Assembly (NCBI RefSeq): GCF_001194135.2
Contig: NC_068985.1
Location: forward strand, 31,221,792 to 31,285,791
Reading direction: 5' to 3'
Length of the DNA stretch: 64,000 nt
Origin: Octopus bimaculoides
Taxonomy: Eukaryota
The notes under the pieces are model-generated. The model worked only from the letters and a program-made list of their open reading frames with translations. It was not told the origin of the DNA and did not search any database. Position 1 is the stretch's first letter; every line of letters starts with the position of its first letter. Both the position numbers and the translations under genes were made by a program. This document shows, in pieces, positions 9,550 through 54,034 of this stretch.

Positions 9550-10410
9550 GTAAGAGAAATGATGCTATGATACTCTAAAACTTTGAAGTCTGATTATTAA
9601 ATATATATAAATTTAACTGATATGTATCTAAAATTGCAATTATTTTGCAATACGTGTGTGTGTGTGTGTTGATGCAGACACATTTTCTTTTTATTTGACT
9701 GTAAGTGTAACTATTACACAATTGTTTCTCTTCAGCCTGTATGCACATGTGACTTTGCTGTTCGTTGATAGAATCTTTGTGCTGTGGGATTTTAAAGTCA
9801 CTGTGTTTATTTATGACACACAATGTCAAGAAGAAAAATTCTCCTGTTGCTTTATTTTTTTGCTTTTGTTTTCTTCTGTTCCTTGCCCCCTTCCTAATCC
9901 TTTTCCCTTATCTTTCAATGAATTATTGATTATATTTTTATTTCATTGAAAACAGCTTTTACAACAGTGTTTCTCTTAGACATATATGCATATGCAAAAT
10001 TGGTCTTCACTCAAATTTTTCATGAGATTTATAATTTGCCATATTTACATTAACAATGTTAAGAAAAAACAGAATTTATTTCAGCTAAAATACTTTTTCT
10101 TCTCATTTTTTTTTACTCGTATTGCTCTACAATTTTTTATTCTTTTCATTCAACTGAAAACATTACTGTTACATTATATACACATGGGACTTTGCTGTTT
10201 ATCAATCAGATTTTCATGGAGCAGGATTTAAGTTCCCATGTTTTCAGCAGAAGTAACAGAGTGACTCAAGATCCAAGAGTTTTGTGCATTAGCACTTATC
10301 AAACTAGTCACAGGTTAAAAATCCTATGAGTTTATATAGCTATTGATAAATAAATATATTTCCTTCTGGCTTATTTCCCTCCTGTTTGCACCAACATACC
10401 TGTATGTATA

Positions 10411-13800: not shown

Positions 13801-14508
13801 AGCGAAAACACCTAAAAGCTCCATGAGGCTCCAGCAGGGGGGTGTGGCGAACCCTGCTGTACTCATTCACCACAACTTTCTCTCGCTCTTTCTTCCTATT
13901 TCTGTTGTACCTGTATTTCAAAGAGCCAACCTTGTCTCACTCTGTGTCACACTGAATCTCCCCTAGAACTACATTAAGGATACACGTGTCTGTGGATTGC
14001 TCAGCCACTTGCACGTTAATTTCACAAGCAGGCTGTTCCGTTGATCGGATCAACTGGAACCCTCGTCGTTATAACCAACGGAGTGCCATGACAGAAACTG
14101 TATTGATGGTTACTGCGGAGAGAAAAGTTGGAGTTCTCACTTGGAATTTAGGAAATAAAGGTAGTGAGTGAACATTGTCATAGAGAAATTGCACTTCTTA
14201 GGAATGAAATACACAGTGTTTGTGAATTCGGGTAGATCTCTAGAGAAAGAATAAGATTGACGAGTATAGGTAAAATAGGAGTTAGCTCAGGATTGTGTTA
14301 CTTGGAGTAACAGGAGTATCATCAGCCTTGTTAGGCTTGAGTACTTGGGAAGTTTTATCTCTTTGTGACTATATACATGTAATGGTGATTTGTTGGAGCA
14401 AAAAGAACAATTCAGGAGAGGTCTTGTTGTATTGGCATTGTGAAATTGGAAACAAAATAGGTAATAGATGCTACTGATTTGTCTGTTTATGAGCATTCTG
14501 GAGGATAT

Positions 14509-14539
<31 letters not shown>

Positions 14540-17500: not shown

Positions 17501-20500
17501 TCTTTTAAATCTGGTACTTCTATCAGCCACTTTGCTGAACCACTAAGTTACAGGGGATGTAAATAAACCAACACCAGTTTTCATGCAAGGTGGGTGGGAG
17601 AAAACACAAAGACACATACACATGTAAACATATACGTATATATATATTTATTTGTCCCACCCATGCTAGCATGGATGGCAGACATTGAACAATGATGATG
17701 ATGTATGTGTGTGTGTGTGTGTGTATCATGGGCTTCCACACAGTTTCACAAGGTGTAAAGTCAGCCCAAGGCTGCAATAGAAGATACTTGCCCAACATGC
17801 CATGCAGTGGGGCTGAACCTGAAACCTCATGGTTAGAAAGTGAGCTTAGTTGCATCTAACTGATTTTTTTTTAAATTCCATTGTATATTCACTTTCCCAT
17901 GCTAGCCTGAGTGGGGTATTTTTATTTTTGTAGGAAAAAATCTTTTTTGCAGATAGATGTCCTGGAAATCAAGTAAATTGGATTGTATCAAGTAGCATGT
18001 GTTTTACACAAGAACATAATATAATAGCTGTAGTAAGAATTGGACTTAGGATTAACCCCAACGATTGTTGTTCTTGTCTAGAATATTTATCTAGATATTG
18101 GTAATTGGTAATGTTATCAAATTATATTGTTTCAATGCAACCAAACTGTAATGCTACACTTGACATCTTGTAACATCTGACTTATTTCACTGTTTCAGAC
18201 TGCACTTCATTTGGCTGTGATAAAAAATTTTCCAAGTATGGTTCATATTTTAATAAAACATGGAGCTGACGTCAACATATTAGCAAAAGTAAAAATCTGA
18301 CTTTTAATTCCTAAAATTAATTTACATTATCCATAAAAATCAGTATTTTTCTTACCATAAGGTGATATACAAAATATTTCTCTTCTGTATATTACTAAAT
18401 AATAATACCATATTGATTTCCTAACACTGGTTTGATGTTTCAGATTTATCAAATATTAAAATAGTGTTGACGGAGAATCAAAAGTTGAATCCTGTATCTA
18501 AATTAGACTATATGAGTCTATAAGAATCTACTTCTTTTCTGAGATATTCTAGACTAATCCTTTATTAAAGTGAAAATTCAGATATTCATTTAAAATAAAC
18601 TTACTTTTTTTTCTATTTGCCACCTATTTATTCATAATCATGTGGATGATATAGATTATACAAACTTAGACATATACATACTGTTGTATATATTGTTTTT
18701 CTTTTCATTTTATAACATTTTTTTGTTATTAGTAACCACTCAAATGTGAAGTGAAATTAGGAAGACTTGAGTCATGCAGTGTTATGTGCTTTGCTCTGAG
18801 TACAAAACAGTAGATGTCAATAGTTTACTACTACAGATATTATGCTTTGTGTCATATTCTGTAGATATTTTTAATCATTACATCCTGTCAGTTTAAATTC
18901 ATCCACCAAATATTTTTTATTTCATATCCATAAATACTTTCTCCATGCCTTCTTACTACTTTCTATAATTTTTTTCAGAGCTGTCAGGAAGACAGTTCAA
19001 AATTTGAAGCCCCTCTTCATCTGGCTGCCTCCAAACTAAAAAGAACATTAGTGAAAGAACTTTTAACAGCCAAAGACATTGATTTAGATCTCAAGAACTC
19101 AGATGGTAATGGAAACCTTTGTTTATTTTTTTTTTTTTCATTTTCATCTTCAAGTCCTTATTCAAATTTGATTTCAGTTTAATATTTTCATATGTAGGCG
19201 ATATCTATCATCATCTTCATCATCAATTTTTCTCTGATCATATTTTCCCATACAATCATGTATTGAACTTTACAACTTTCCATGCATCTCAGTTCTATAT
19301 CATTTCAAATGTGATACTTAATTTTCTCAAATATGAAATATTTCTTTGAGTAGGCACAGGCATGACTGTGATAAGAAGTTCAATCCCTACTGTAGCATCT
19401 TGGACAAGTATTGCCTGCATCTGTGTGGCATCTTGGACAAGTATTGCCTGCCATAGCTTCAGGCTGACCAAAGCCTTGTGAGTGGATTTGGTAGATGGAA
19501 ACTGAAAGAAGTTTGTTGTACATATACATGCATGTGTGTGTTTGTGTGTCTTTGTTTTGACAGCATGTGTTAGTTGCAAATGAGTGTCATTGTCATAGAA
19601 CCAGTCTCATTTGTTTCCAGTATTCTGCAATGGGGAAACAGGTGAAAGTTGGTGACAAGAAAGTCAAATTGACTAGAAAATTTTCCTTAATATGCTCGAT
19701 ATAATTGATCATAATTGACTGATTTCTTTACAAAAGTAACCTGAAACATTTTTTGTGGGACAAGCCATTGTAGTTCAGGCTTCTGTTGCTGGAACCCACT
19801 TGATACAACCTTCAGGCATCAGTCTGCTCACTGGCAGTGTTGGGTGTGGTCGTACTGCCACATGGTGTGTCTTTGTTTTGCAGTGCTTCTTCCCTGTTTG
19901 TCAATTTTTGTGGTGGCTGAAATGAAAGAACATTGTGCTTCTGCAAAATTCTGTTTTCTGCTGGGGAAATAGATGGCCAAAACAGTTGTCCTGCTTCAGA
20001 TAGCTTGCAAGGCCGCTGCCATGAACAAAACACAAGTTTACAAGTGATTTTCATGCTTTAGGAATGATTACTTGTTTGAGGACTAACATCATTCAGGGCA
20101 ACCATAAACCTCCTGAACAAATGAAAACATGAAAATTCATGAACTGATCTTAGAGGACTGTCACGCACAATTGACAANNNNNNNNNNNNNNNNNNNNNNN
20201 NNNNNNNNNNNNNNNNNNNNNNNNNNNNNNNNNNNNNNNNNNNNNNNNNNNNNNNNNNNNNNNNNNNNNNNNNNNNNNNNNNNNNNNNNNNNNNNNNNNN
20301 NNNNNNNNNNNNNNNNNNNNNNNNNNNNNNNNNNNNNNNNNNNNNNNNNNNNNNNNNNNNNNNNNNNNNNNNNNNNNNNNNNNNNNNNNNNNNNNNNNNN
20401 NNNNNNNNNNNNNNNNNNNNNNNNNNNNNNNNNNNNNNNNNNNNNNNNNNNNNNNNNNNNNNNNNNNNNNNNNNNNNNNNNNNNNNNNNNNNNNNNNNNN

Positions 20501-33924: not shown

Positions 33925-34089
33925 CTATTTTTTAGGTGGTGGCCTGTAACAGCCAACCACCACAGCATGATCTCTTTCATAAGGTTCAAGTGTCAGCTGC
34001 TCAAGGGGTTTAATTTTTTCAGCCTTCATTTTGTTTACTTCACCAGCAAATACTGCTTCTGGTTCTGCTGTAGAATCTATACAATTAGC
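33925..34089 (-). CDS. FBL: Fibrillarin exon 8 ([11 protein letters not shown]...YRPPPKK*)
   Basis: gttgcag acceptor; TAG stop at 33927-33925. Confidence 0.98.
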
Positions 34090-37000
34090 CTGCAACACAG
34101 AAGGAAAAATAGTTCAAATAATATATTTCAGTGTTATGAAGGATATGCTGGAAGACAGAAGCGACATTAACAATATATGTGAAATGATTCTAACAAGTAA
34201 TTGAAACCAAATTAGACTTGTCTTGGTTACATCATTCTACATTAAGCCAATAATTCCAATACAAATAATTGCTAAGTAACAGGAATGAAATATATCAGGT
34301 TGGAAAGAAGTCTTATTGCATTTCTGGCACGATCACTTTGAGGGTACTTGTTCAATACTTATGCATTAAGTTTTACACTGTTCTTTTTCTTTCTTTGCAG
34401 ATAACTTTATACCATAGTGGTTAAATTTGTATCAACTTTACCCTTTTAAAATTAGTTTAGATCACACCCATATAAGACAATCTATGTGAAGAGGTTAAAA
34501 ATGGTACTGCTTCTTTGCTTCAACATCTGAAGAATTTTACACCCAAGGGATTAACAACTTGCCAAATAGAAAGATAAAGTTGTCAGTAATGAGGGGAAAT
34601 ATCTTGATTAAACAAATGAATTAAAACTTGAAAGAAGCATTTGTTTCTTTCTCACCTTAAAATATAATGGAACTTTCTTTCCAACATAATACCAAGTAAA
34701 AGAGTAGAATTTATGCTTTCAAATTAAAAATATAATTTTTCTACTAGATCAAGAACAATTTTCCCAGTATATTAATATTACTCATTCTACTGCCAATAGA
34801 AATAAGCAGTTAAACTGATTGTGGCATTACTTTTCAATTGAGGTGTAAAACAAATATGAATCAAATATTGTTATTATTTAATTTGAAGATATTAAGAATT
34901 TACCTTAATAGAAATGACAACATATCCATTGTTCTTTAAAAAGTGATGTGCATTCAAAGCAACGATTCTAGCTTGGTCTGGTTGAGCAACATCAGAGAAA
35001 ATTGTATCAACTATACCTGGAAAAAAAAAAATATTTATGATCAGCATTGAAATGAGATACATTATAAAGAATACAGAGACTACAAAATAAATTGATAATA
35101 CTAATGCTTACCAACTAACATTCTGTATTTCAATGGATGTCGAGCATCTTCAATAATTGGTACAATATTGGTGCGTTTTGTAGCAACATTTAATAAATCA
35201 CGACCACTACGATGGGAAAACTCTACAGCATAGACAATACCGTCCTATAGAAAAGAATTTAGATCATTAGCAGAGGCCAAGAAGTTGTATTTACTTTAAA
35301 CTTAATCAACAGACTAAATGCTAACTCAGCTTTATCTTCATATTTCTAACTAAATATCTCATACCTACACAAAAAAATTCTCAAAATTGATCATAAGATA
35401 TTTCCTGACAGCATCTTTCCTAATAAAACCTTATTTGTTGCTTTGGAAATTTCTTATATTATCCAAATAAACATCTTCCAGTTATTAGTAAGTCTTGGTG
35501 AGCAATCTATCCTCATGGATTTAATAAAGGGTTCAGTTCTAAATTCCCAAAAACATTACTGAAAACAACAGGCACCTTAAGATGGTGAGAGAGAACTACC
35601 AAAACATTATATGACTATAAACAACCAAAATGAAGGTATTTACTCTGAATGTTTCAGTATAATACTGATTTTTTACCTCATACATAATTTTGAAAACAAC
35701 ATGTACATTACTGAAAGCGACTTGAACCATCAAAAGTTTTCTCTAACATGTGAGAAAATATTTCAATTCTATCATGCAGGAAACATTCCAGAATTTTCAG
35801 TACTAACACCAAGAACAAAAACTGGAGTGACAGATATATAAAAATTCCCTGGATTTACCTATTCAACTTTACATCAAAATACCAATACAAATCATGTTAT
35901 GTTAGTGATAATGTGTGACTTTATTAATGTGCACCATCTAACATTGTTATAAGTTTGCGTTCTCTGAATTCATTCTACATTCTATTTCTGTTATTTATTC
36001 TTTTTCAAATTGTAAAGACTTCAGATTTAACTGCAGGCAGATACACACACACAGATAAGTGGACTTCTTTCATTCTTCGTCATTCTGATCCACTCTCAAG
36101 GCTTTGGTCAGCCTGTGGCCATAGTAGAAGACACTTGCCCAAGATGCCAAACAATGGGACTAAACTTGAGACCACATAGTGGGGAAGCAAACTTCTAACT
36201 TCAGTCACAATTGCATCCACTTTCCCCATATGGAAAGTAATCCAATACTTCACAACCAATATCCATAAATGAAAGTAACTAAAGTTTAAAAATTGTACTT
36301 CCCCCAGACTTGGTATTCAAAGGCTGGTTTCTAGGGACAAAAATGTTAATTTTACCAATTATCAAACAGAAACAAAAATTCAAGTTGACAACTCACTGGA
36401 CCAACGAGATCTGAAACATGGCTAACTGTGGTTCCTGAAGCAGCTCCTAAATATAAAACTTTGCTTCCTGGTTTCATGTGGATGTCATCAATTCCACCAA
36501 GAATAGCTGCTGCTAACTTAGACCGGAAAGGATTCCATGATCTGTATTCAATTTTTTTGTCTCCTTCCTGGAATTAGAAAAAATAATAATAAAAAAAAGA
36601 TTAAATTTGTATCAAATAATATGCAATATTGTATGAAATTACTAAGTATTAAAGCTAGCAAGCTTTCTGATCCTATAATGCATCCAATAGTAGATAATAC
36701 AAAGCCATTTCTACAGAAAAAGAATTCGTAGAAAAGAATATTCAAAACTCAGTGCATAAAAATGATTATGTTCCAAGTTGATCTTTACATGACGACTACT
36801 CTATCCAGCCCAAATATTCTACCTGTCTCATGTTCGAACTGGTCAGAACCAACCTCTTATACTTACCCTACAATATCATTCTAAAAGTAAACAACCACAT
36901 TAAAATTTTGAAGCTATGACATAAGCCATGACTAATTATGACCATTTAACATTCAGATTCATTGATGCAATGCATTATTTATCTACATTTTAAAAAATTA

Positions 37001-40000
37001 ACCATGTAGTATCTTGCAGCTTCAAAATTTTGAAGATGTGATTGTTTATGCATTTAAAACAGCCATATCTGGCCCAAATAATCTATCTATTTTATGTTCA
37101 AACCAGACAGATCCAGCCTCTCACACCTACTTTACAATGTCATTCTAAAAGTATGCAATTACATCATCATCATCATTTAACGTCCATTGTCTGTGCGAGT
37201 ATGAGTTGGACAGTTTGACCAGGGCTGGCAAACAGGAAGGCTGTAACTAGGCTCCAGTCTGTTTCGGCAAGGTTTCTACAACCGGATGCCCTTCCTAACA
37301 CAAACCACTCCAAGAGTGTAATGGGTGCTTTTACGTGCCACTGGCATGGATACCATTTGCGTGACACTGGTATCTGCCACGACTGCAGTTTAACTTGGCT
37401 TGATGGGTCTTCTCAAGCACAGAATAATGTCAAATGGACTCAAGTCATTGCCTCTGTGAGGCCCAATGCTCAAAGCCCAGCATAATATCAAATAGTCTCA
37501 GTCCTTTCCTCCATGAGGCCCAGCACTCGAAAGGTGCTTTTACATGCCACTGGTACAGGTGCCATTTGCGTGACAGCAATATCTGCCACGATTGTGATTT
37601 TACTTGGCTTGATGGGTCTTCTTCTCAAGCACAATATAATACCAAAGGTCTCAATCACATCACTGACATCTCAAAAGTGAGATAATGAATGATTAATTCA
37701 AAAGAATGTGAATAAATAAGTACTACATTTGACAGAATATAAAAAAAGACAAGAAAAAAAAAAGGACACCTTACTTCAACAACAATTTTTTTCTCGCCAT
37801 ATACACTATCTCCAACGACCATATTTTTTGTAACCAATACATCTTCTTTACCACGAGCAATAAAAACACCTATTTGAAGTAAGATTAAAACTATTAGATA
37901 CATGAAATAAAACAGGACATCTTAATGAAAGTAAAACACAATCAAAATAAGCACTGAAGACTGTCACTATTAGCTTACCTTCATGTCTGTGAGGTTCAAT
38001 TATAACTTTCTGCCCACCTCTCATACCACCTCGGCCACCTAAAAAACAAACAAATTTAAGTGTACTCTCAAGACTATTATCAGGAAGAGTAAAAGCACTA
38101 AATAGCACCAAATATTTTAAGAAAATAAGACTCAATTAAAAAGATATTTACCCCCACGTCCTCTGCCGCCAAATCCTCCTCTGCCACCGAATCCTCCTCT
38201 GCTACCAAATCCTCCTCTGCCACCTCCACCCCGGCCACCAAATCCTCCTCTACCACCACCGCCACCTCTACCACCAAAGCCTCCACGTCCACCAAAGCCA
38301 CCACGACCACCTCCACGTCCACCACCTCGAGGTGAGAATCCTGAAAGAAAGAAAACAGAACATTATTTAAATTATTTTACATGGTATTAAATCCTGAATG
38401 AAGTTACAAAATCTTTGAATGTCAATCTTGATATTATAATGAAAATTAATAGAATCAACAATGACCACAGTTTTAATAAATTTGAGTATTAAGGCAGCTA
38501 GCCGGCCAAATCATTAGTATGGCAGGCAAAATGCTTAGCATTTCATCCATCTTTACATTCTGAATTCAAATTCTGCTGAGGTTGACTTTGCCATTCATCC
38601 TTTCAGGGTCAATAAACTAAGTACCTGTTGAATACTGGAGTCGATGTAATGAACTTACTCCCACCCTCAAAATTGATGGCCTTGTGCCAAAATTTGAGTA
38701 TTGAAACTATTTAAGGACAACCACTATGTTGCTAGTTTTGTTTATCTGCAAAAATATCATTCAACATTTAGTGTTTCTTTAATTTTGATATCTTACCGAT
38801 GAAAGCAGGCAGAAATACATTGTGATTATCAGTTACATCTCATTCTGAGAATCAAATCACATTAGGGTTACTTTTATCTTTCAGCCTTCCACTAACAAAA
38901 TAAGTAGTACAGTAAATTTAACAGTGTTCTCTCACTTTGTGAAAAAGTCAGTAAATCGATTTTCTGGTAACTTAGATTCTGAGATTTCTTTTTCAGCTTG
39001 CTACCTCACCATCAAATTATTCTGCTACATCTTATTCAATTCAAAATATAGTTTCATCAAGAGAATTCAATGCTTTCAATTCTCAGTTAAAATTTGGTAA
39101 ATAACTTGGTCAAGCCTTCAAGTTTACAATGCTCTTATTGGCTGGTTCTCTGTCAATAACAACAATGAGTATTCAGTGGTTCAATCAAATGAATTACCTG
39201 CTCGTTGAATTAATGATGTTAATACACCTCCTCTGATAGACAGGAAGAATATTATCTCACTTGGAAACAGGTGAGAGTTGACATCAGAAAGGGCATCATA
39301 TAGAAAATCTACACACAAATAGTTCTGCATATATGTATATGCATTTTTTTATAGGCACAGGCATAGCTGTATGGATGAGAAGCTTGCTTCTCAACCACAT
39401 GGTTTCAAGTTCAGTCCAACTGTGCAGCACTTTGAGCAAGTGTCTTCTATAAACTCAGACCAACCAAAGGCTTGTGAGAGAACTTGGTAGGCCAAAGTTC
39501 TCTTTTGTGTATGTGTGTCAAAGTGCTTGGACCTCCTTTGACGGATAAGAAGATTGAGCATTTCACAGATACAATGTAATTCTTAAGCAGAATCAGCATG
39601 ACAGTGTGTGACAAAGCTGTACCTTTGAATTACAGGTAGAGTCCATCCATCAGACACCTGTACAGTTTCCATCTACCCAACTTCACTCACAAAGATATGG
39701 GGTGATCTCAGTCTATAAAAAAAAACGACACTTGATCAAGTTGCCATGCAGTGGAATTAAACCAAGGGTCTCGTGATTATGAAGCAAACTTCTTAACCAA
39801 TTGGCCACAATGCATCTATACTTGTTATTTAACCCCAAGTTAGACCCTAATCAAACAGACCTACAATCAAAAGCATTCTGACAATGACCATCCTGTCTTT
39901 TTTTTCTTTTCTTTTTTCAGGCATAATATATCCTGGACTAGATTGCCTGATATTTCTATCCTTTTCTCAGATAGCAGAATGTATATGCTACTTCTAACTA

Positions 40001-43000
40001 GTCAAGCAACGACAAGGACTCTCTTGTAAACCAATGGGAGCAGGGCTGAAGCATGAATTTTTCAAAGGTGATGGTTGCTACATCCAAGAGCTACGACAAA
40101 CAGGCTTCACAACTTGGGGCGTTTCTTTGTTTTTCATAATTTTACACATTCACAATTACTGTAGTCACATTTTCTCTAATATCTAAATCAGATATGTTAT
40201 ATCAGGAGACACTTTCTCTAGTTTGTGTCTTTTGCTTGCCAATTTCTAGAAACCATGTTTCAAGTATTTTTTGAAGCTGATATTTTTTTTCTTTCCTTCT
40301 TTCAATAATTCAAAATCAACAATACATCAGAATGCTTTCATATAAAATTCTGCAAAGTTTAAATACCAAAGGTGAACATTATTTTAATTTTTTCTTTGGC
40401 ATGGTCCTACTAAATTTTGGCCTGTATAAAGCCTTTCTTTTCATATTATAAATAATACATAAAAAATTCTAATTCATAATTAAGCTTATCTTGAAATTCT
40501 CTGAGGGAATTTATTGCTAGTTAGGTTAAATGAACAGTAAATATTCTACGATAAAATTTAATTACATTGTTAGGAATTAAAATTGTGTAAATTATTAAGT
40601 TTAAACTAGAAAAAAACCTTTTGCTCTAGAAACCAAGTGAAACAGGAACTTTTTGCAAATTATTTTTCAATTTATTATTCTGTAAATGGTTATAATCATG
40701 CAGGAATACAAACCATGTTTTAAAAAAAATCTTCAGTAAATTTCTGTTGATAATTAGTTACTATGTTCAATACATATGATTTAAGTCTAAATATATATCA
40801 ATTGATAATTAATCCACTAATCACTTAAATACCAGGTTTCCCCGATGTATTTTAAAACTTTTGAAGTTACAGAATCTGCTAAATTAAAGAATGCTCCAAA
40901 ATAATCCTGAAATCTATACATTACTGAACTATATGAATAATCAACAGATCATTTTGTGTGTTCCTAAACTGTGCCAATTTACTATGTCACTATTTCATCG
41001 CAAGTTACTTTCAGCCTGTCGTATTGTTTTTACATAAAAGAAGCAAAAAGATTTCCAAAACACGTCGCTTTATTTCAACATCTCAATTGTCTTTTTTTAA
41101 ATATCAAATCACGTAACGTTTTTTTTATTAAGGTACAAAGTGTGCCTTAATCATAATTTGTAGAATATACTGACACATGATGTTACAGCCAGTTTATCAA
41201 ATAAGAAGTTAGCAATTATAAATTAGTCAACGTATTAGGTATTTATGCCCCATATGAAGTTTTACTAGGGACTTACTTATTCTCACAGAATGGTTCAATG
41301 GCACTGATGATTGGTCAGTCTGTTCCACCTGCAGTGTGTGCTGCACTCACTGAATAGGAGTTGTTTGAGCACTGACATTCACCCTTGCAGGCCAATGTTG
41401 GTAGATTATTGTCTTATCTGTTGAGCTGGCAAACTGAAGGCAACCTGTTTCTCTGGACTGCAAGTGTGACCTGTTGCACTGGAGCAGTCGTCCATCACTG
41501 TGCATTTTGACGATGGTTACCATATCTAATTTTCTTGAAGGACAGACACTCTGCTGCCTATAACTTAATTCAGGAAGGCCTTTAGCATTTCCGTTGTTAT
41601 TTCTTTCTTCTGGCATTCAACCTTTCTCAGATTTGATTGTCTTTACAATCTGTGATAGTAAATATTTCCTTACCGTTATTAAGACTTCTCTCTCCTCCGT
41701 TTTCTGGGTACGGATAGGTTTCTTCTTGGTATGGATCATATGGGATACTTGCTCCAAACCAATGTGGACGGGGATTTCTGTTTTGGTACATAGTTGTTTT
41801 TGTAAGGCAAAATTTTTCAAAATGGTGTAACCTGTGGCATTTTCTGCATTCTTTGTTAAATGCATGACAGTCTTTTTTTCTCTTTCCATGGTTTTTTCCA
41901 CATCTTCCACACGATCTGGTATTTTTCACCGTTATTTCATGACATGAGTCAGTTTTTCCTTCATTAGCATCATTATAACATGTACTGCTTTCTATCGTAA
42001 CTTCATATGTCCGTATGCTCTCAATAGCTAACTCGAGAGTAAGATCTGGTTCGTCTACAAGATTTTTTATTTCATTTCTCCATTTCAGTCCTTTTATTAT
42101 TTGTTCAAGGATTCTCTCCTCCTGGTTTGTGCCGAAGTCGCATCTTTCGGCTTTTGATTTAAGTCGATCTAAATATTCGTCAACTGACTCTTCAATTTGT
42201 TGTATTAAAGAGAACTCTAAGCGTTCAACCCATTTGTTTGGTTTTTCTATCTGATGGGCTTCAGAAGTTCTGAATAGGTTTGCTGATATTTCTTCCTGTT
42301 CAGCCGTCATTAATTCTCGACCCTCACCTATGCTAAGTAAAATATAGCTGTTTAAGTTTTTCGTCTAGTTCGTTAGCAATGAAATAAGAGCTCATAAAAT
42401 CGACCCATTTGTTAAGTCTCGCACTTGTTCTCGTTAGACAGAATCTTGGGAATAGGATTAATGACGCCACCATTTCTCACGCTTGCCGCTCGATTCAGTT
42501 CACTTGGACACGTTTAAAAAAAAAACACAGAAAACTCCTTTACCATATGACCATCACCTTTGCAATTATTTGCTTTCATTTTTTTTTTATTACTTTTTTA
42601 ATCTGTAAATATAACAGGCATATCGCTGTACCACTGCCACTAAGGCATATTTGTTGTTTTACACAAATGAAGCAGACGGATTTTTAAAATATGTTACTTT
42701 ATTTCGCCACCTAAATAATGTTTTCTTAAATAGAAAACCACGTGATTCATGAAGGTACACTCAAGGGGACGTATCATCGATACATCATGGCCCAGAGATA
42801 TAATTCGTATTTGTGTTGAATAACAACTGCATTAAAATGCCTGACCAGAGATTTTATGAACGAAATAAAATTGTCATTAGGAACTTTATTTTTCTTAGTA
42901 TGATTATTTTTATTCTAAATTCAAGAATTTAAAATCTGTATGGTTCTTAAAATACATAACTGAATAAACACAAGTTTTGCACAACTGATCAATACAATAT

Positions 43001-43481
43001 TATAAAAAATCTTTCTAACGTCGATGACAATATGAAATAGTATGTTTTTAATTTAATTTTCAAACATTAAAATACTACAGCAAAGCAATTTCTCCACTCT
43101 TGCATTAATAGTAATTGCTTTCGTCCTTTTGCGCAGTATACCGACACATGCTGTCATTCAACAAGATAGACATGTTTTCATTTAAACAAATATACATTCA
43201 TTTGATTAATTTAAAACACTACATCTTCAATGGTTTCACATTAATATATAAACATGAGTAACAATCTAAAATGCTCAATGAGACAAAAAAAAAAAGTGAG
43301 GGATATTTCGATATAGTCATAATACAAAGTGACCATGCGGGAGTAATTCAAACGAGTGCGTACCGATATTCCCTCGCCCGCATTTCCTCAGCCCTTCTGT
43401 AAATATTTCAAAGGAATCGAGCCAAAATTTTTGTATTCCGCGATGACTAAACTACGGAATGGTTTATTGATTTACACACAC

Positions 43482-43539
<58 letters not shown>

Positions 43540-43541
43540 TA

Positions 43542-43576
<35 letters not shown>

Positions 43577-43883
43577 GAAACTCAGTGGAAGCCACGTATA
43601 ATTACGGATGTTATCAACCGGTTATTTTCATCATACTTAGACGAGGTCCCAAACTTATTATTTGCCTAATGTTATCAGCCGGTTACTGCTGTCGGGAAGT
43701 TTTTGTCCCAAAGTGATCGCAATAAGAGGCTTCCACTGAATATATAAACAGAACCAACAGGTTACAGTTCAATCACAGTAGAAAATAAACATCGAACATA
43801 TAGAAAAAATTCCTTACATATATATTATAAAAATATTTTATACATGTCAATAGAAAAGTTTAAGACTTACCGGGAGGACCCAT
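33925..43883 (-). CDS. FBL: rRNA 2'-O-methyltransferase fibrillarin, 312 aa, 8 coding exons
   Basis: complement join(43871-43883,38152-38340,37979-38038,37775-37869,36397-36567,35112-35244,34904-35016,33925-34089) = 939 nt. GAR (RGG) domain, [49 protein letters not shown]; all introns GT-AG. Confidence 0.98.
34904..35016 (-). CDS. FBL: Fibrillarin exon 7 ([17 protein letters not shown]...VISIK)
   Basis: tttccag acceptor, AAG|gtaaat donor. Confidence 0.98.
35112..35244 (-). CDS. FBL: Fibrillarin exon 6 ([17 protein letters not shown]...KYRMLV)
   Basis: ttctatag acceptor, G|gtaagc donor. Confidence 0.98.
36397..36567 (-). CDS. FBL: Fibrillarin exon 5 ([17 protein letters not shown]...DLVGP)
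   Basis: ttccag acceptor, CCA|gtgagt donor; SAM-binding motif. Confidence 0.98.
37160..37670 (-). mobile_element. LINE 3' UTR fragment with (GAT)n tail and internal duplication, in fibrillarin intron 4
   Basis: (CAT)n-ttaacgtcc start like the RTE tails; a block at about 37325-37430 repeats at about 37533-37650. Confidence 0.65.
37775..37869 (-). CDS. FBL: Fibrillarin exon 4 ([10 protein letters not shown]...YGEKKIVVE)
   Basis: caaatag acceptor, GAA|gtaagg donor. Confidence 0.97.
37979..38038 (-). CDS. FBL: Fibrillarin exon 3 ([20 protein letters not shown])
   Basis: tttttag acceptor, G|gtaagc donor. Confidence 0.97.
38152..38340 (-). CDS. FBL: Fibrillarin exon 2 (GAR domain)
   Basis: tttctttcag acceptor; [11 protein letters not shown]...; G|gtaaat donor. 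Confidence 0.97.
41627..42310 (-). CDS. Gypsy (Mag-like) Gag ORF, 227 aa: capsid C-terminal region plus two zinc knuckles, inside fibrillarin intron 1
   Basis: [24 protein letters not shown]...[10 protein letters not shown]...[14 protein letters not shown] is the retrotransposon gag pattern; knuckles CGRCGKNH(x6)C and [14 protein letters not shown]. Whether it is expressed is unknown. Confidence 0.75.
   Translation of the reverse strand: MTAEQEEISANLFRTSEAHQIEKPNKWVERLEFSLIQQIEESVDEYLDRLKSKAERCDFGTNQEERILEQIIKGLKWRNEIKNLVDEPDLTLELAIESIRTYEVTIESSTCYNDANEGKTDSCHEITVKNTRSCGRCGKNHGKRKKDCHAFNKECRKCHRLHHFEKFCLTKTTMYQNRNPRPHWFGASIPYDPYQEETYPYPENGGERSLNNGKEIFTITDCKDNQI
43583..43738. mobile_element. 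pogo/Tigger-type MITE in fibrillarin intron 1
   Basis: TIR CAGTGGAAGCC / GGCTTCCACTG; internal repeat TTATCA(A/G)CCGGTTA twice; TA flanks not preserved. Confidence 0.65.
43871..43883 (-). CDS. FBL: Fibrillarin exon 1 coding part (MGPP-G)
   Basis: ATGGGTCCTCCCG|GTAAGT; phase 1 fits exon 2 (G-FSPRG), the same split as in vertebrate FBL. Confidence 0.85.
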
Positions 43884-43912
43884 TTCAGATAATTATTTCG
43901 AACTAAATTATC

Positions 43913-44006
43913 CACGTGCGTCTAAAGGAAGTAGTTAACTGAATTGTGGAACTCTTCGACAATGAAAAGTTATTTGCTCATCAAAGTTTGACTTCCTCTC
44001 ACGAGA
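43913..44006 (-). promoter_or_regulatory. Putative fibrillarin promoter/5' UTR motifs: E-box CACGTG (43913-43918), ETS core GGAAGT (43991-43996), near-palindrome TCTCACGAGA (43997-44006)
   Basis: Motifs read directly, 30-125 bp upstream of the ATG; function inferred. Confidence 0.4.
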
Positions 44007-44607
44007 CCGGGTAAAAACTATTCTGGAACCAAATAACGAAATTTAATAAAGTCAATTAGAAGTAATATGCATTTTTAATATTTGATCTTCTAGTAATATT
44101 TTCGACATAAGCGCATATTTTGCATCGACAAATGGAAATGATGTTAGAGGAATGAGAATTAATTTATTTTGTTTTACATGCGCGTGTATGTACGTAAATA
44201 AGTCGTCTAAAAGTCCATAAGTCAGGAAAAAGATACACTTGTATTTCTGTTAATACACTGGTTATATTACCCGAAGTGGGCGGAGATAAAGATCATGGAC
44301 CGCACCCTATTTGCGATTTTGGGGGATTTTATTTTTATATGAACACACTATATGGAGGGCGGAGATTCCGAATCTGCAAAAAAATCTGCATTTCAAAATT
44401 CAAATCCCACCCCTAAATTTCTTAAATTTTCACTTAAAAAAATTTTTTTTTTGGCGAAATACGTAGAAAATACGGAGATTATGATTCTGAAGAAAAAAAA
44501 ATTCTGTCCTTCATTCCCAGGGAGTGGTACACATGTCATTCATTTCCAGAACGTTGTACACGTCATTCATTTCTAGGAAGTTGTACACACCCAGAGGATT
44601 CCTTATT

Positions 44608-44699
44608 GGCTATCTCTGATGAGCGTAGGGTTATACAATCAGATTGTTACCTAACACTCCGTCATATCCCTAGCGCAAAACCGATTGGTAAGATCAGCC
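44608..44699 (+). ncRNA. Type I hammerhead ribozyme fold with G12->A core substitution, probably inactive
   Basis: Stem I GGCT-ATCT / AGAT-c-AGCC; core CTGATGA (44616-44622); stem II GCGTAGGG / CCCTA-g-CGC; AAAA in place of GAAA (44677-44680); stem III ACC-gatt-GGT; cleavage triplet GTA (44688-44690). Confidence 0.75.
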
Positions 44700-44815
44700 G
44701 TGATGAATATATAATACTGTACACTTCGGATAATATATATTTTAATGGTGACTACAGTAGCAGGGACGTCAGTACCAATGGTAGAGGCACCAGTAACAGT
44801 GACAGGAGCAAATGT

Positions 44816-45720
44816 TAATAGATAAACATTTCACTAGTTTGCATAGATACAGATACGTTTTCAACAGGCACGACCTTAGGGTCTCTTTTAGCTGTGCCCC
44901 CAGTATTAAGAGCATTCTAGTTAGCATCTCTAGACTACAAGTGAAGGCAGGATATTCATGCAAGGACTGCAACAGATGTTCATTGAGGGACCACTGTGAA
45001 ACCAAGGGCATTGTCTATGAAGTCAAGGTACTGGCCAACTCTAACAGCAGCAGCTCCCCTAACGGTGACTACAGTTGCAAGGACATTAGTACCAATAGTA
45101 GCAGCAGCAGAAATGTGAACAGAACCAACAGCACCATTGCCAGCAATAACAACATCAATGACAGTATCCCTAATGACCACAGCAGCATCAGCATCCCTAA
45201 TGGCTACGTCTACAGCAGCAGGCTCGACAGTTCCAGTAGCTGCAGTGGCAGTACCATCAGCAGCAATAACAACAATAACATCGAAGATAAGCAATGGCGT
45301 TATCCCTAACAGAAACAGCAGCAAAGACATTGCTAATGACATCTACAACAACAATGACAGTGCTTCCATCAATGGTGATAGCCATAATAACAATAATGGC
45401 AACTTGGCCAACACTGGCAATGGCAGCACCAACACCATCACCACCTCCAATGACGCCAACACCAGCAGTACCAGCACCAGCAACAGTGGCAGGAGCAACA
45501 GACACACCACTGTCATCACCCAACCACAGAGATACATCGGTTGTTCCAGGAACTCATTCAAGCAATGCCTCTCCAACCACAGATCCTCTTTAAGGATACC
45601 GGAAAGGAGATTCGTCACGTCATTAGCCAGCCATATTTTACCCCCAGGCTCCACTATAACTTTCCAAAAAATGAATGCCCACTGGTGGTTGGAAAAAAAA
45701 ACAACTTTATTTTTAATATT
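44816..45720 (+). mobile_element. Penelope-like retroelement relic (linker plus GIY-YIG endonuclease), frameshifted and split by a low-complexity block
   Basis: VFNRHDLRVSFSCAPSIKSI, Cys cluster CKDCNRCSLRDHC, GIVYEVKV, then in another frame YIGCSRNSFKQCLSNHRSSL...TSLASHI. Confidence 0.8.
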
Positions 45721-46213
45721 TCACCACAATTATTTAATACAAAAGAATCTACTAGTATGTCTTTTATTAAGTACTGAGTACAAAAAAAGTACATTATTGA
45801 CTAAGATAAAAATGGTGAATCACTTTAATGAGAATCTTGTGCCTGACAACTACAGCACCACACCCCACCACACTTTTTTCTAGGTCCCACATTGGAAATC
45901 ACTGCCTTAGAAGGACACTCTCCTGAGAGAATGTTTAAGAACCTGGATGAAAAATCTTTTTAATCTGGCTATATATCATGAGACTATTTGTATTTTGTAT
46001 GCAGAATGCTCCTCTAACTGAATTTATCTCAACCATATCCATTGATCATAGAGCTAAGGAAAAATAAAGGAAAAGTATGGTGCTGATTATGTATATCAAC
46101 AATATGTTGAAGGAAAATACCTCAGAAGAGCATGTGGCGTATTAAATGCAAATGCTGTTGAATCTTACATATATAATGTTTTTTTTATGTTGGCATTCCA
46201 TCGCTTACGATAT

Positions 46214-46552
46214 CGAAGGTTCCAGTTGATCCGATCAACGGAACAGCCTGCTCATGAAATTAACGTGCAAGTGGCTGAGCACTCCACAGACACGTGTACC
46301 CTTAACGTAGTTCTCGTGGATATTCAGCGTGACACAGTGTGACAAGGCTGACCCTTTGAATTACAGGCACAACAGAAACAGGAAGTAAGAGTGAGAGAAA
46401 GTTGTGGTGAAAGAGTACAGCAGGGTTCGCCACCATCCCCAGCCAGAGCCTTATGGAGCTTTCGGTGTTTTCGCTCAATAAACACTCACAACGCCCGGTC
46501 TGGGAGTCGAAACCGCGAGTCCACTGCCCTAACCATTGGGTCATTGCACCTC
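46214..46552 (-). mobile_element. tRNA-derived SINE
   Basis: Reverse complement of the family at 13723-14088. Confidence 0.75.
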
Positions 46553-46664
46553 CACATATATAATGTAACTAGTTACAAAAGCTTTGATGAATTGAATCCA
46601 ACCTATTAGTTTACTAGATGCATGAGATTTCTACAAATGTTAGGCCTCACTATCAATGAATATG

Positions 46665-49600
46665 TGTAGGAAAGTGGTTATACACCATTAGGTGTATACC
46701 CGCTTCCGTACATTAAATTTCTTGAAGAAACAACGGAACGCAGATTCTGAACTATCAACACAACAATATTTATTTACAGAGGAAATAGGCAGCACTTCGC
46801 CCTTTGGTTGCTGAGACGCCGTCAATGATGTTGGTGGTTATTTGTCTAGCTCCAGAGTTGGAATGTTGGAGACAGACTGCTATGTCTTGGCTCTTCGTCA
46901 GCCGGCGAGAAAGAGAAATGAATAAGGGCGCGAAGCTTGGATATCGATGACTACGCATGCGCATGAGACTCTTCCTGTGTTCCTTCCGGAACTAGTCCCT
47001 GCGCATGCGTGGATAATCTTTCCAGAAATGTTGTCTGCTATTTAAGGCATCACTACATGGCTCCCCTGCAAGTGCCGAAAGCACAAAAATAGAAAATTTG
47101 GAGGGACGCCTGAGGCAAGATGGCCACCGAAACCACCCACCAGATGTGGCACAAACATACACAAAGAAAAATCAAAGAAATGAGTGTACACTTGTGAGAT
47201 ACATGCATGCAATGTATAAATGAATTGACAATGACAAAACAACCGTGATGACAACTGTCCAGGAAACTGGAATCACTTGATGTAAAAGTCTGATTTTTTT
47301 GTTTTTTCTGAAAGGAAAGAAAATATATGAGTGCACAAGTGTGTGTGTGAGAGAAAACACAGAACATAGTAAAAGTGTCTGTAATATAGACTGTGAAAAG
47401 TCTTAAAACACTGAGATAGAGAAAACCAATTCATATTAAAATTCCACAAGGAGATAGAATGTTCATACGCAGGAAGTTGCGGTCAAGGAGCAGAGCTGTA
47501 GTTGAGCGTCGGATGCTGGGATNNNNNNNNNNNNNNNNNNNNNNNNNNNNNNNNNNNNNNNNNNNNNNNNNATATTAAAATTCCACAAGGAGATAGAATG
47601 TTCATACGCAGGAAGTTGCGGTCAAGGAGCAGAGCTGTAGTTGAGCGTCGGATGCTGGGATCTGTGTTACCTGGTACGGAATATTCTGGCTGGTTAGTTT
47701 TGGTCTGTAGATCGTGAGTGGAAACATCCACTCTAACAGGGTCGAGATAAAACTGCGCTTGTTGATGTTGGTTGCTTGTGTACGTGTAGAAGACATGTTG
47801 CTGCTGGCGACGTCGGGGGCGATGCTTGTAGTTCGCAGTGGTTGTTGATGTCATTGCTGGAAACTGACTGGAGCTGTGTTCTGTATGTGTGTTTGCGATG
47901 GTGTATGCATTGGTAAAGATGTTGACAGTGGTGTGTGTGGTGTTTGAAAAACGGGCATGTCGTACACAAAAGTTGAGGGTTTGTCAAGGTACGCTTTTTC
48001 AGACGGTCGACAGACACAATCTCTGTACGACCATTAGTGTTGACCTTGAAATTCAACCCAAGACTGCGGGTTGGGCAACGCATGTAAGGCAGCCTTAAAT
48101 TACCTATGAAAACGCTCAACCATCCCATTAGAAGCGGGATGGTAGCTGGTGGTGCGTATCATCATCATCATCATCATCATCGTTTAACGTCCGCTTTCCA
48201 TGCTAGCATGGGTTGGACGATTTGACTGAGGACTGGTGAAACCGGATGGCAACACCAGGCTCCAGTCTGATTTGGCAGAGTTTCTACAGCTGGATGCCCT
48301 TCCTAACGCCAACCACTCAGAGAGTGTAGTGGGTGCTTTTACGTGTCACCCGCACGAAAACGGCCACGCTCGAAATGGTGTCTTTTATGTGCCACCCGCA
48401 CAAGCCAGTCCAGGGGCACTGGCAACGATCTCGCTCGAAAATCCTACAGGAGCCAGTCAGGCGGTACTGGCGGAGAGAGANNNNNNNNNNNNNNNNNNNN
48501 NNNNNNTGACAGGGCGTCTATTTGAGAGGTACCGTTGAGTGGCATCGCTGGAAAATGCTGTCATGAATTCGGAGCTGCGAGCGAAAATGACCAAAAGATC
48601 CCGTGCAAATGAAGATAAGCCAGTAACTCTTCCATTCTCCGGCCGAGAGAAACAGAGAGGTGACGAAATATGCTGAACTGCGAACAAGTAAGCATCAACA
48701 AATGTTATGTACTCACTGAAATGTAACTGTGCATTTTACTGCTATTTTCAGCAAGTAGAGGATGCTGTGTAAGAATGAATTGACGTCTCGTGAAACATGT
48801 AGGAAACTGCTCAAAAAGTTGTTAGGATGAAATAACCGTGAAGTTTTTGTGTGAAAAGCCACAAAGGTCTTAGCAATAAAGAAGTCTTTGGTTATAGGCT
48901 CTGGAAGTCATTGACAAAATGAAAAACTTTAACGTAGAAAAATTGTCTTAGCTTTTCACTTGTGTTTAATGAGAATGTAGAGGCAATCCTGAAGTTGAAC
49001 GTCGCGAAACATACGAATTCAATGGCTGTTGAAACGAGGTCTGTAGATCTTTTAGCTCGGGGTACCAATTGTAGTATTATTGGTCGGCAGATCAGAATTT
49101 CCACTGCAGTTGGTCTTTATTCGGGGTCATCAATTGTAGGGAAGTACCGTGTGATGACCAAAAGAATGTCCTGCAGCTGTGAAATAAGCTGATGCGAGTG
49201 ATAGTGTGTATTCTCTATCTGTGATGAGCATGTTGACGGCTCGTGTAGTATTGTCGGTCAGCAGTTCAGATTTTCGGCTGCTGTTGTTCTTACTCGGGGT
49301 CACCAATTGTAGGAATTCTCCGGGCTGCGTTTGTTCTTGAGTCAGGGTCACCAATTGTAAGAAAGTGGTTATACACCATTAGGTGTATACCCGCTTCCGT
49401 ACATTAAATTTCTTGAAGAAACAATGGAACGCAGATTCTGAACTATCAACACAACAATATTTATTTACAGAGGAAATAGGCAGCACTTCGCCCTTTGGTT
49501 GCTGAGACGCCGTCAATGATATTGGTGGTTATTTGTCTAGCTCCAGAGTTGGAATGTTGGAGAGAGCCTGTCTCCAGAGTTGGAATGTTGGAGAGAGACT

Positions 49601-51849: not shown

Positions 51850-53840
51850 CTTTGGTTTGCTCAATTAGATGCATATTTTTCCACCCATGCTGTGCCTCAC
51901 CAACAGCAACTGAACTTTTTGTAGTAGAATGCCTTCACCATTTGCATGCTCAGTGAAAGATTTCATCACTGAGCCACATCCAGATGTGACTTATGTGTCC
52001 ATCAAATCTGAGGTTCTCCGTTGGAACACACAATCCATGGAGAGTAAATTCCAGACACTAATGCAGGATGAACACCTGGGAGATAGGACACCATCTGAGT
52101 TTCTTCATTGGTTGCGAGAACTCAGCAACGCTCCACTTGAGGACAATCTTCTGTTAAGGAAATTGTTTTTCTCTTGTCTACTGCCGAATGTCTAATCAAT
52201 ACTGGCCACAACAGTCAACCCAATTTGCTCGATCAGATAGCCACCATGGTGGACAAGATCACAGAGCTTACTGTACAGCCCACACCTCACCATACCTGTT
52301 TGAACCCCGTAGTAGCTTCCTCTACTACTACAGATTCTCCTGCCTCATCATATGACAACATTTTGGAGAGAGTCGATGCATTAACACGTCACATGGACAC
52401 ACTGTGGCGAGAACATGCCAGCTCTTGGCCATGGTCATCTAGTTCTGTTCCAATGGTTTCCAATCTCTGCTGGTGCCATGCCAGATTTAAGGACAAAGCC
52501 CATTGATGCATCTAACCCTGTTTATTCAAGCTGTCGGGAAACTAGTTGCAGAAGATTTGGGCATGTCAGTTTCTTCCTGAAATTTTTCATCTCATCATGC
52601 ATTCTTTGTTAAGGATTGTGTGTCTCACGAATCGTTCATGGTTGACACTGGATCCAGCTGTTCTATTTTGCCTTTGCGCCTTACTTCAGACAAGCCAAAG
52701 CAATCTGTCATTAACTTGCATACGGTGAACCTATCCCCAATAAAAACTTACAGTCAGGTCTCATTAAACCTAGATCTCAACCTTTGAAGTGATTTTAGGT
52801 GGGTTTTTGTTATAGCAGATCTACCACATCCTATTCTGGGTGTGGACTTCTTAAACCACTTTCACTTATTAGTAGATGTCAGGCGACAGCGACTCATGGA
52901 CGATTCTACGTCTTTGTTTATACCTGCTCGGGTTACTACTAATGCTGTTTTCAGCCCATCATTTTTTGTCGCCACTGCTGGAGATCAGAGGTTTATTGAC
53001 AAAGTTGTCCATGGACTTGACTGTGTGTTTGCTTACATGGATGATTTGCTTATAGGTAGCGACACGTGAAAATCACCTCCAACACTTATCTCAACTTTTC
53101 CAGCATCTTCGCCCCAACAATGTGCAAATCAACCCTGATAAATGTGTTTTCGGACAGACCTCTCTAGAATTCCTAGGTCATTATATCAACTCTAATGGTA
53201 TCTAACCTCTCTCCTCCAAAGTTGATGCAATTCAACACATCTCACTTCCCACTTCTTTACACCAACTGCGTCATTTTTTGGGAATCGTCAACTTCTACAG
53301 GAGATTCATACCTAAATGTGCAGACAAGTTACTTCCTTTGACTCAACTATTGAAAGCAAATAAAACAAAAAATTCTCCTATCACTTTATCTGCTGAGGCA
53401 CTATCTTCTTTTGAGTCAATCAAGAAGGAAATAGCTTCTTTTCCTTTACTTGCACAGCCGGTTCCTGATGCTCATGTCTCTTTAACAGTTGATGCATTGG
53501 ATTCTGCGGTCGGTGCCATTTTACAAAATACCGTCGATAATCAAACTTGACCTTTGGCATTTTTTCTTGTCAATTAAAGCCAGCTGAACAGCATTACAGT
53601 ACGTTTGATCGTGAACTCAAAGCGATCTACCTGTCGGTTTGTTGTTTTCAATATCAACTCGAGTGCCGAGATTTTGTGATTTATATTGATCACAAGCCTC
53701 TTACATTTACTCTGCCATCTAAATTGGACAGACACTCACCTCATGCTCTTTGCCACCTGGACTACATTTCCCAGTTCATGAGTGACATTCGGCATATACC
53801 TGGAACAGAGAAGTACCTGCTGACGCACTCTCTCGTTGCC
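51850..53840 (+). mobile_element. Decayed Gypsy gag-pol, CsRn1-type, with most of RT deleted
   Basis: Gag WFAQLDAYF, EHLGDRTPSEFL and CHCC motif CWCHARF...C..PC; protease FMVDTGSS and LGVDFLNHF; RT AYMDDLLIGS; RNase H LTVDALDSAVGAIL, YSTFDRELKAIY, DHKPL, DALSR; many stops and frameshifts; no LTRs seen. Confidence 0.9.
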
Positions 53841-54034
53841 GTCTTCTCTTTCATCTCCTACTGCAATCGATTTAACTACCATTGCGCAGTATCATTTCAA
53901 AATTTTAATTTCCCCCCACCCCCACCCCCACCCAAGAATTGGAGGGGGGAATTAAAATTTTAAAATGCCATTTTTTTTGCAGAATCAATATCTCTGTACT
54001 CGAAAATGGCGTATTCTGTAAAAAAAAAAGAAAA

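Follow-up and report, generated by a model that had tools for sequence, protein, structure and literature searches.

Fibrillarin (FBL) is encoded on the minus strand of the 64,000-nucleotide stretch of the Octopus bimaculoides genome analysed here (contig NC_068985.1, positions 31,221,792 to 31,285,791; hereafter the window, numbered from its first letter), and intron 1 of the gene carries a 227-codon open reading frame (ORF) derived from the gag gene of a Ty3/Gypsy retrotransposon. We found that nearly all RNA over this ORF is spliced, in frame and 46 nt before the ORF's stop codon, to FBL exon 2. We put at roughly 0.55 the probability that the fibrillarin gene has co-opted an old, internally deleted Ty3/Gypsy element in this intron for use as an alternative coding first exon. 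A bolder proposal, which we advance tentatively and at somewhat less than even odds, is that octopuses make a selection-conserved second fibrillarin in which a Gag fragment replaces the first four residues of the core rRNA/small nucleolar ribonucleoprotein (snoRNP) 2'-O-methyltransferase. A reading of the DNA letters without database searches (the original prediction) had described an open ORF nested in FBL intron 1 on the same strand, as it indeed is, and had taken it for a candidate stand-alone nested gene, which the splicing of its RNA contradicts.

The gag ORF is spliced in frame to fibrillarin exon 2

We assigned FBL to the minus strand, the strand of the ORF, by tblastn and by joints seen in RNA. 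The tblastn query, an approximate human fibrillarin sequence, placed methyltransferase exons between 38012 and 33931, with 70-88% identity in the well-aligned exons. Exons 3-8 were assigned to the methyltransferase domain by tblastn, RNA joints, splice contexts and translation together, and RNA joints confirmed that the introns are of the GT-AG type on the minus strand (Table 1). The locus has the GAR domain, the fibrillarin methyltransferase domain and the canonical exon structure of a fibrillarin gene, and its canonical mRNA, built from RNA-supported exons, encodes 312 amino acids. Exon 1 ends in ATGGGTCCTCCCG, followed by the donor GTAAGT, and encodes MGPP-G. A 902-nt RNA contig from run X1 links 43870-44398 to exon 2; the 5' end given for exon 1, 44398, is that of the RNA contig. 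Raw reads with loose ends at the exon 2 acceptor (59 in run X20 and 44 in run X21) gave a consensus that matched the end of exon 1, with agreement of 0.96 and 0.77, respectively. Intron 1 thus extends over 43870..38341, between the last base of exon 1 (43871) and the first base of exon 2 (38340), and encloses the ORF.

Over the ORF, RNA contigs of three runs all stopped at 41673, a point through which DNA assemblies continued unbranched. Overhangs of 29, 20 and 10 nt (runs X5, X1 and X37) matched window positions 38311-38339, which are the start of FBL exon 2. A de Bruijn artefact as the cause of the RNA break was ruled out, since the DNA is unbranched there and the overhang is exon 2 sequence. 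A 59-nt contig across the junction of the gag exon with exon 2 had a depth of 18.8, and raw-read depth fell at this main donor, whose sequence (AACG/GTAAGG) is that of a good donor, from 7-12 to 0, 0 and 2 in three runs. The exon 2 acceptor (38340) is common to canonical exon 1, the gag exon and a minor donor further downstream. Use of the minor donor was seen in a 456-nt contig from X5, which runs from 41702 to 41276 and then continues with 38340-38311, at a depth of 3.9 compared with 18.8 for the main junction.

The transcripts that the original prediction had called for are present: the gag exon was recovered from no fewer than 14 RNA runs belonging to five or more studies, and in five runs its isoform made up roughly 8-38% of the FBL transcripts, as judged from depth or from reads over junctions. 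Upstream of the ORF, raw-read coverage tapered between about 42390 and 42550 with no loose ends, one X5 contig extended up to 42883, and an RNA contig from another species (organism D, below) ended at 42363 beside adapter sequence. We infer that the gag exon has a separate start zone in element-derived DNA, about 50-240 nt upstream of the gag ATG. Splicing from canonical exon 1 into the gag exon was considered and ruled out, as no raw reads had loose ends at 42330-42620. An additional observation in this region is an X1 RNA contig (depth 31) that adds 24 nt upstream of 42410 (GTGCAATGAAGTCGCAGGGTTGGG, minus strand). These 24 nt do not occur in the window, and their junction has no AG acceptor; they might come from an exon that falls in a gap of the assembly, from a paralogue with a 30-mer in common or from a variant peculiar to the individual.

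From the gag ATG (42310) to the main donor (41674) there are 212 codons plus 1 nt, which is the same phase as that of canonical exon 1. Built from RNA-supported exons, the gag-exon mRNA encodes 520 amino acids, consisting of Gag residues 1-212, a glycine and then FSPRGGG onwards through the methyltransferase domain to the fibrillarin stop. This is the only long reading frame of the mRNA, and canonical exon 1 and its ATG are absent from the isoform. In transcripts that begin at or below 42394, the first AUG is that of gag; longer leaders carry two upstream ORFs (uORFs), with ATGs at 42408 and 42395. As in captures of the SCAN type, a gag domain is joined in frame to a host protein in a mature mRNA.

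The ORF is derived from a decayed Ty3/Gypsy element

A search of a large protein database returned 13 relatives of the ORF at 47-84% identity, and several relatives run past the zinc knuckles into a DTGA protease motif. An index-free search returned 3293 relatives at E <= 1e-3, many of which are polyproteins of 1300-2000 amino acids. The relative P0002 (47% identity, 99% coverage) lies in L001, a locus of another assembly, in which it is followed by RVT_1, RT_RNaseH and Integrase_H2C2/rve domains. Because P0002 precedes reverse transcriptase (RT), RNase H (RH) and integrase (IN) in this locus, we classify the gag family as Ty3/Gypsy-type. L001 also contains a 1232-aa RT-RH-IN ORF on the opposite strand (13811-17509, minus), inside or beside pol, that looks like a nested insertion.

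The Pfam profile Retrotrans_gag (PF03732) matched the ORF at 23.0 bits against a cut-off of 24.1 and over profile positions 50-96 of 97 only; the family member P0016 passed the same profile at 25.4 bits. The first residues of the ORF align to about position 70-90 of the long polyprotein relatives, and the missing gag N-terminus was recognisable by tblastn upstream, at 42416-42339, where it is out of frame and ends in TAG. The gag capsid pattern of the original prediction holds as homology to Ty3/Gypsy relatives, but the match is partial, with about 70-90 N-terminal residues missing. Both zinc knuckles keep every cysteine and histidine of the family consensus, as had been noted from the letters, and their spacing (CX2CX3HX6C and CX2CX4HX4C) is that of the consensus.

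Downstream of the ORF lies a remnant of the C-terminal part of the element's integrase, which marks the internal deletion of protease (PR), RT, RH and most of IN. The predicted lack of surrounding element parts was borne out, with no PR or RT homology near the ORF and no pair of long terminal repeats (LTRs) at 38400-47500; the LTR search in that interval returned only a microsatellite, a low-complexity repeat and a pair resembling a short interspersed nuclear element (SINE). An Rfam scan of the whole window gave 0 matches. Judged from these alignments, the ORF is a remnant of an internally deleted, 5'-decayed Ty3/Gypsy element. The original prediction had offered a recent, internally deleted insertion as its own alternative; the internal deletion is there, but the insertion is old (see below).

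The AlphaFold model of the ORF was poor overall (pLDDT 47), with a confident four-helix unit at residues 43-107. In Foldseek searches the best match of this unit, a weak one, was the capsid C-terminal domain of Rous sarcoma virus (RSV; probability 0.94, TM 0.61 on target), and the unit also weakly matched the Ty3 capsid and the PNMA2 capsid. A sequence search of PDB with the gag family profile returned only chance matches to ribosomal proteins. On our reading, the model shows one of the two capsid lobes in full and a stub of the second. The ORF, proposed as an Arc/PNMA-like capsid gene, is thus not a complete one: the N-terminal lobe is truncated, and the four-helix unit resembling the capsid C-terminal domain (CA-CTD) and the knuckles are what is left. 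Because only one capsid lobe and two zinc knuckles remain in the modelled protein, it is unlikely to form capsids in the manner of Arc or PNMA.

The gag-derived sequence is retained at an orthologous locus

In three genomic assemblies of the window organism, the interval 40300-42687 forms a single unbranched contig, whose depth (15x, 50x and 52x) is that of a single-copy sequence. Four or five short pieces from diverged paralogues, at 80-88% identity, overlap the ORF, and colinearity with a paralogous contig extends up to 42705. None of the copies is near-identical, and the exact ORF sequence is single-copy in the DNA assemblies, which settles the copy count that the original prediction had asked for in favour of a unique sequence.

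L002 and L003, two assembled contigs drawn from further public runs, have the same sequence and are colinear with 44214..41317 at about 85% identity. They span FBL exon 1 (ending in ATGGCACCTCCTG before GTAAGT), the intron, the gag part and the integrase remnant. Since they are colinear with the window and no such copy is present in the DNA assemblies of the window organism, we take L002 and L003 to be the orthologous locus of another species, and the insertion therefore predates the split of the two species. As is expected of a domesticated gag gene, the sequence occupies a single-copy orthologous locus that lacks LTRs and pol. The gag ATG and the main donor are conserved in L002, and the ORF tail past the main donor has a 4-nt deletion there.

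A third species, organism D, expresses a copy that is about 93% identical and is known from an RNA contig without flanks; its frame is open for 167 codons, as far as reconstructed. Indels inside the ORF are in frame both in L002 (3 nt) and in organism D (69 nt). The 69-nt insertion is duplication-like and lies at about 41937-41982, in the linker that separates the zinc knuckles from the helical part. In protein databases the gag sequence occurred at high identity only in fragments of the orthologue, with the exact ORF protein not on record, and cluster look-ups returned no further orthologues.

By codon position, the ORF and L002 differ by 21, 20 and 43 substitutions, which amount to 41-42 synonymous and 42-43 nonsynonymous differences, with no stop. 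The original prediction had named a ratio of nonsynonymous to synonymous rates (omega) near 1 as a sign against a retained gene, and the ratio proved to be well below 1. The Nei-Gojobori estimate was 0.20 (bootstrap interval 0.12-0.32), and pairwise maximum likelihood gave 0.18-0.19 (likelihood ratio test against omega = 1, p ~1e-10); the other two frames of the ORF gave omega >= 1.4. In a neutral simulation that used a mutation spectrum derived from the flanks, 20.5 +/- 3.8 synonymous differences were expected and 0 of 100000 runs reached 41, and the probability of no new stop was 0.008. The synonymous fraction was 0.50 in the ORF, compared with 0.24 in the integrase remnant (element frame), 1/7 in the decayed gag N-terminus and 0.13-0.36 in intron frames, all of which look neutral. 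Constraint was strongest in the zinc-knuckle block (omega 0.07, with a 53-nt identity run), and codons 1-143 had an omega of 0.17-0.18. These comparisons indicate purifying selection on the ORF frame between species.

Evidence against co-option and rival explanations

Several observations weigh against co-option as a coding exon. In L002 and L003, A8 stands in place of the A7 run of the first zinc knuckle, a +1 frameshift at codon 144 that ends the ATG-initiated ORF at 150 amino acids and breaks the fusion frame; four or more assembled contigs, from two or more runs, carry the L002-type +1. Domesticated gag genes are expected to keep their ORF intact in all species that carry them, and this one is frameshifted in L002/L003. 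The original prediction of an orthologous site with an undisturbed frame is therefore half right: the insertion is present in FBL intron 1 of that species, but the frame is disrupted. In addition, the identity of the ORF (86.7%) is not above that of the flanking intron (83-89%), and its synonymous divergence (dS) of about 0.45 (third positions 0.20 per site) exceeds the flank divergence of 0.155 per site. Bias in the intron alignment is one likely cause of this excess, at least in part. The evidence of selection comes from one fully sequenced orthologue pair; in the closer comparison, with organism D, 22 listed differences, which are a partial list, comprise 9 synonymous and 13 nonsynonymous changes (p = 0.09). 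The gag ATG has a poor context (T at -3), and transcripts starting upstream of 42395 include the two uORFs. The fusion product is known from RNA and sequence, and the junction between the gag exon and FBL was seen in the window species only. For organisms C and D, in which repetitiveness or divergence of the GAR exon hindered the search, the canonical junction of C was the only one seen.

The frameshift itself is probably recent or bypassed, because the original frame still has an omega of 0.22-0.25 (p ~0.002) downstream of it. The organism D contig, X57, breaks exactly at the A-run. The window, L002 (at about 2225) and X57 together suggest length heterogeneity at this homopolymer, arising from polymorphism or slippage.

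Transposon-driven chimeric transcripts are common, and the gag-FBL transcript might be a non-functional by-product, in which a cryptic promoter in the remnant and a chance donor yield a chimeric FBL mRNA with no role at the protein level. The frameshifted copy of the sister species, the weak start context with its possible uORFs, the equal identity of ORF and flanks and a fusion known from RNA would all fit such an origin, and a junction falls in frame by chance in one case out of three. We nevertheless consider a by-product unlikely, although it is the rival that we take most seriously. It does not account for an omega of about 0.19 (p ~1e-10), for a synonymous count that no simulated run reached or for the neutral appearance of the adjacent element remnants. 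Nor would it predict that indels are in frame apart from the single A-run change, that constraint continues downstream of the frameshift or that expression is consistent across many runs.

Selection on the frame could also be explained by a stand-alone domesticated gag protein of 227 amino acids (150 in the sister species), made from unspliced or minor-donor transcripts, to which the FBL link would be incidental. The minor isoform (donor 41276) keeps the ORF's own stop, two reads in run X22 read through the main donor, and L002 keeps an ATG-initiated 150-aa ORF over the helical part, where constraint is clear in codons 1-143. However, 0-17% of reads cross the main donor unspliced, and the tail past that donor is the part with a 4-nt deletion in the orthologue. 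The N-terminal capsid lobe needed for assembly of the Arc/PNMA type is missing, and the zinc-knuckle part is the most constrained even though it lies downstream of the L002 frameshift. We regard a stand-alone protein as improbable. More doubtful still is an exaptation that is regulatory only, in which the remnant supplies an alternative FBL promoter and 5' leader, and the transcript either gives a truncated fibrillarin from an internal AUG or lowers FBL output. The gag exon has a start zone of its own, independent of exon 1, and the isoform lacks the canonical ATG, both of which suit a regulatory role. Such a role leaves the three-base periodicity of substitutions in the gag frame unexplained, and it has to reckon with a gag ATG that is in frame with FBL, with no stop between them, and that precedes every other AUG when transcription starts no further upstream than 42394.

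A candidate fibrillarin isoform with a gag-derived N-terminus

If the element has been co-opted as a coding first exon, as we favour, transcription would start in element-derived DNA, and the gag exon would be spliced at GTAAGG to exon 2 while exon 1 is skipped. We infer that the fusion mRNA is translated and that selection acts on the fusion rather than on a short stand-alone product. The translated product would be fibrillarin with a new N-terminal module, made up of a capsid C-terminal-type helical lobe and two nucleocapsid zinc knuckles and kept by purifying selection. A capsid C-terminal-type lobe is typically a dimerisation unit, and nucleocapsid zinc knuckles bind and chaperone RNA. The likely effect of the module, which is unlikely to build capsids, would be on self-association or RNA contacts of a subset of the box C/D snoRNP particles that contain fibrillarin.

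A gag fragment would thereby have been attached, through the use of an alternative first exon, to one of the most conserved enzymes of ribosome biogenesis. If octopuses do make this second fibrillarin, part of their methylation machinery would have gained a new RNA-binding or self-association module, and the protein would rank as the first such fusion of gag to a host enzyme. It would come from an invertebrate lineage whose RNA biology is known to be unusual. A literature search combining fibrillarin, gag and octopus found no report of a gag-fibrillarin fusion. Should the protein be made, it would offer a natural experiment on how a nucleocapsid and capsid-lobe module affects snoRNP behaviour, as well as a dated example of retrotransposon exon capture in molluscs. 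Should it not be made, the case would show that open transposon ORFs in introns need a check of RNA splicing before they are labelled nested genes.

Other features of the window

Table 1. Features of the gag-derived exon and of fibrillarin in the window. Slashes mark exon ends.
Feature	Position	Strand	Description
227-aa ORF	41627..42310	-	ATG to TGA
Coding part of alternative first exon	41674..42310	-	gag-derived codons 1-212 + 1 nt (phase 1)
gag exon modules			Truncated N-lobe; CA-CTD-like helical unit, ~aa 43-107; zinc knuckles, aa 134-148 and 154-167
A7 run in first zinc knuckle	41873..41879	-	Codons 144-146; A8 in L002/L003
Main donor GT	41672..41673	-	AACG/GTAAGG at 41674/41673; joins gag exon to FBL exon 2
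ORF tail	41627..41673	-	Last 15 codons + stop; intronic in main isoform; aligns to start of protease region of intact relatives
Integrase C-terminal remnant of gag element	41418..41616	-	Frameshifted; blastn to L001 18418-18538 and tblastn
Minor donor GT	41275..41276	-	GAATAA/GTAAGT; joined to exon 2; ORF ends at own stop
5' leader/start zone of gag exon	42311..42550	-	Element-derived DNA; decayed gag N-terminus; two short uORFs
Canonical FBL exon 1	43871..44398	-	5' untranslated region + ATG GGT CCT CCC G = MGPP(G); GTAAGT donor at 43870
FBL exon 2	38152..38340	-	GAR domain; begins with last two bases of Gly codon
FBL exons 3-8	33931..38038	-	38038-37979, 37869-37775, 36567-36397, 35244-35112, 35016-34904, 34089 to stop

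The longest ORF of the window (7917-9578, plus strand) encodes 553 amino acids, with Ser, Asn and Asp in abundance. It is without a Pfam match and might represent a large coding exon of a gene nearby. A low-complexity ORF at 45137-45883 (plus strand) and overlapping antisense ORFs at 44812-45342, all rich in Ser, Thr, Asn and Ala, lie immediately upstream of FBL exon 1. These low-complexity ORFs (44812-45883) contain diverged 69-nt direct repeats and likewise lack a Pfam match. A 138-aa ORF fragment at 53547-53963 (plus strand) matches RT_RNaseH (E = 1.2e-9); it is another pol relic of Gypsy type and has no relation to the gag exon. A SINE-like pair is at 39573-39636 and 46304-46367. Four stretches (38510-39010, 43019-44020, 46025-46525 and 48029-48500), one of which includes a (TA)n(CA)n microsatellite at 43466-43584, had RNA k-mer depths from thousands to >100000, and from this very high depth we take them to be high-copy transcribed repeats.

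Comparison with known systems

The nearest known parallel to the gag-FBL fusion is the SCAN domain, with stand-alone gag genes and host-transposase fusions being more distant. The SCAN domain of vertebrate zinc-finger proteins is a captured capsid C-terminal domain of a retroelement (PMC10516033; bioRxiv 10.1101/2025.03.03.638093). In both cases a helical unit of the capsid C-terminal type, taken from gag, is placed N-terminally in a host protein, LTRs and pol have been lost, and the locus is vertically inherited and single-copy. They differ in that the partner here is fibrillarin rather than a zinc-finger transcription factor, that the nucleocapsid zinc knuckles are kept and that the gag module is an optional alternative first exon rather than a constitutive domain. 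The octopus case also belongs to a mollusc lineage and is known at the level of sequence. To our knowledge, capture of a gag domain within a host protein is known essentially only from the vertebrate SCAN domain.

Most of the domesticated gag genes known so far come from mammals and flies, and most of them stand alone. The octopus exon shares with Arc, PNMA, PEG10 and RTL/SIRH of mammals and with Gagr of Drosophila an origin from Ty3/Gypsy gag, the loss of LTRs and pol, orthologous retention, expression and purifying selection, as well as weak structural matches to the Ty3 and PNMA2 capsids. Unlike those genes, it is spliced in frame into FBL, and it does not have both of the capsid lobes that assembly requires. 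In SETMAR, CSB-PGBD3 and further fusions of host genes with transposases, DNA-transposase domains have been captured as 3' terminal exons. There, too, an intronic transposon ORF is spliced to host exons and gives an in-frame chimeric isoform beside the normal one, whereas in the octopus gene a retrotransposon gag fragment supplies a 5' exon with its own start codon and probably its promoter. Finally, the ORF has 47-60% amino-acid identity to the gag of mollusc Ty3/Gypsy (Metaviridae) gag-pol elements such as L001. In contrast to those elements, the copy in the window lacks LTRs, the gag N-terminus, PR, RT, RH and most of IN, and is fixed at an orthologous site.

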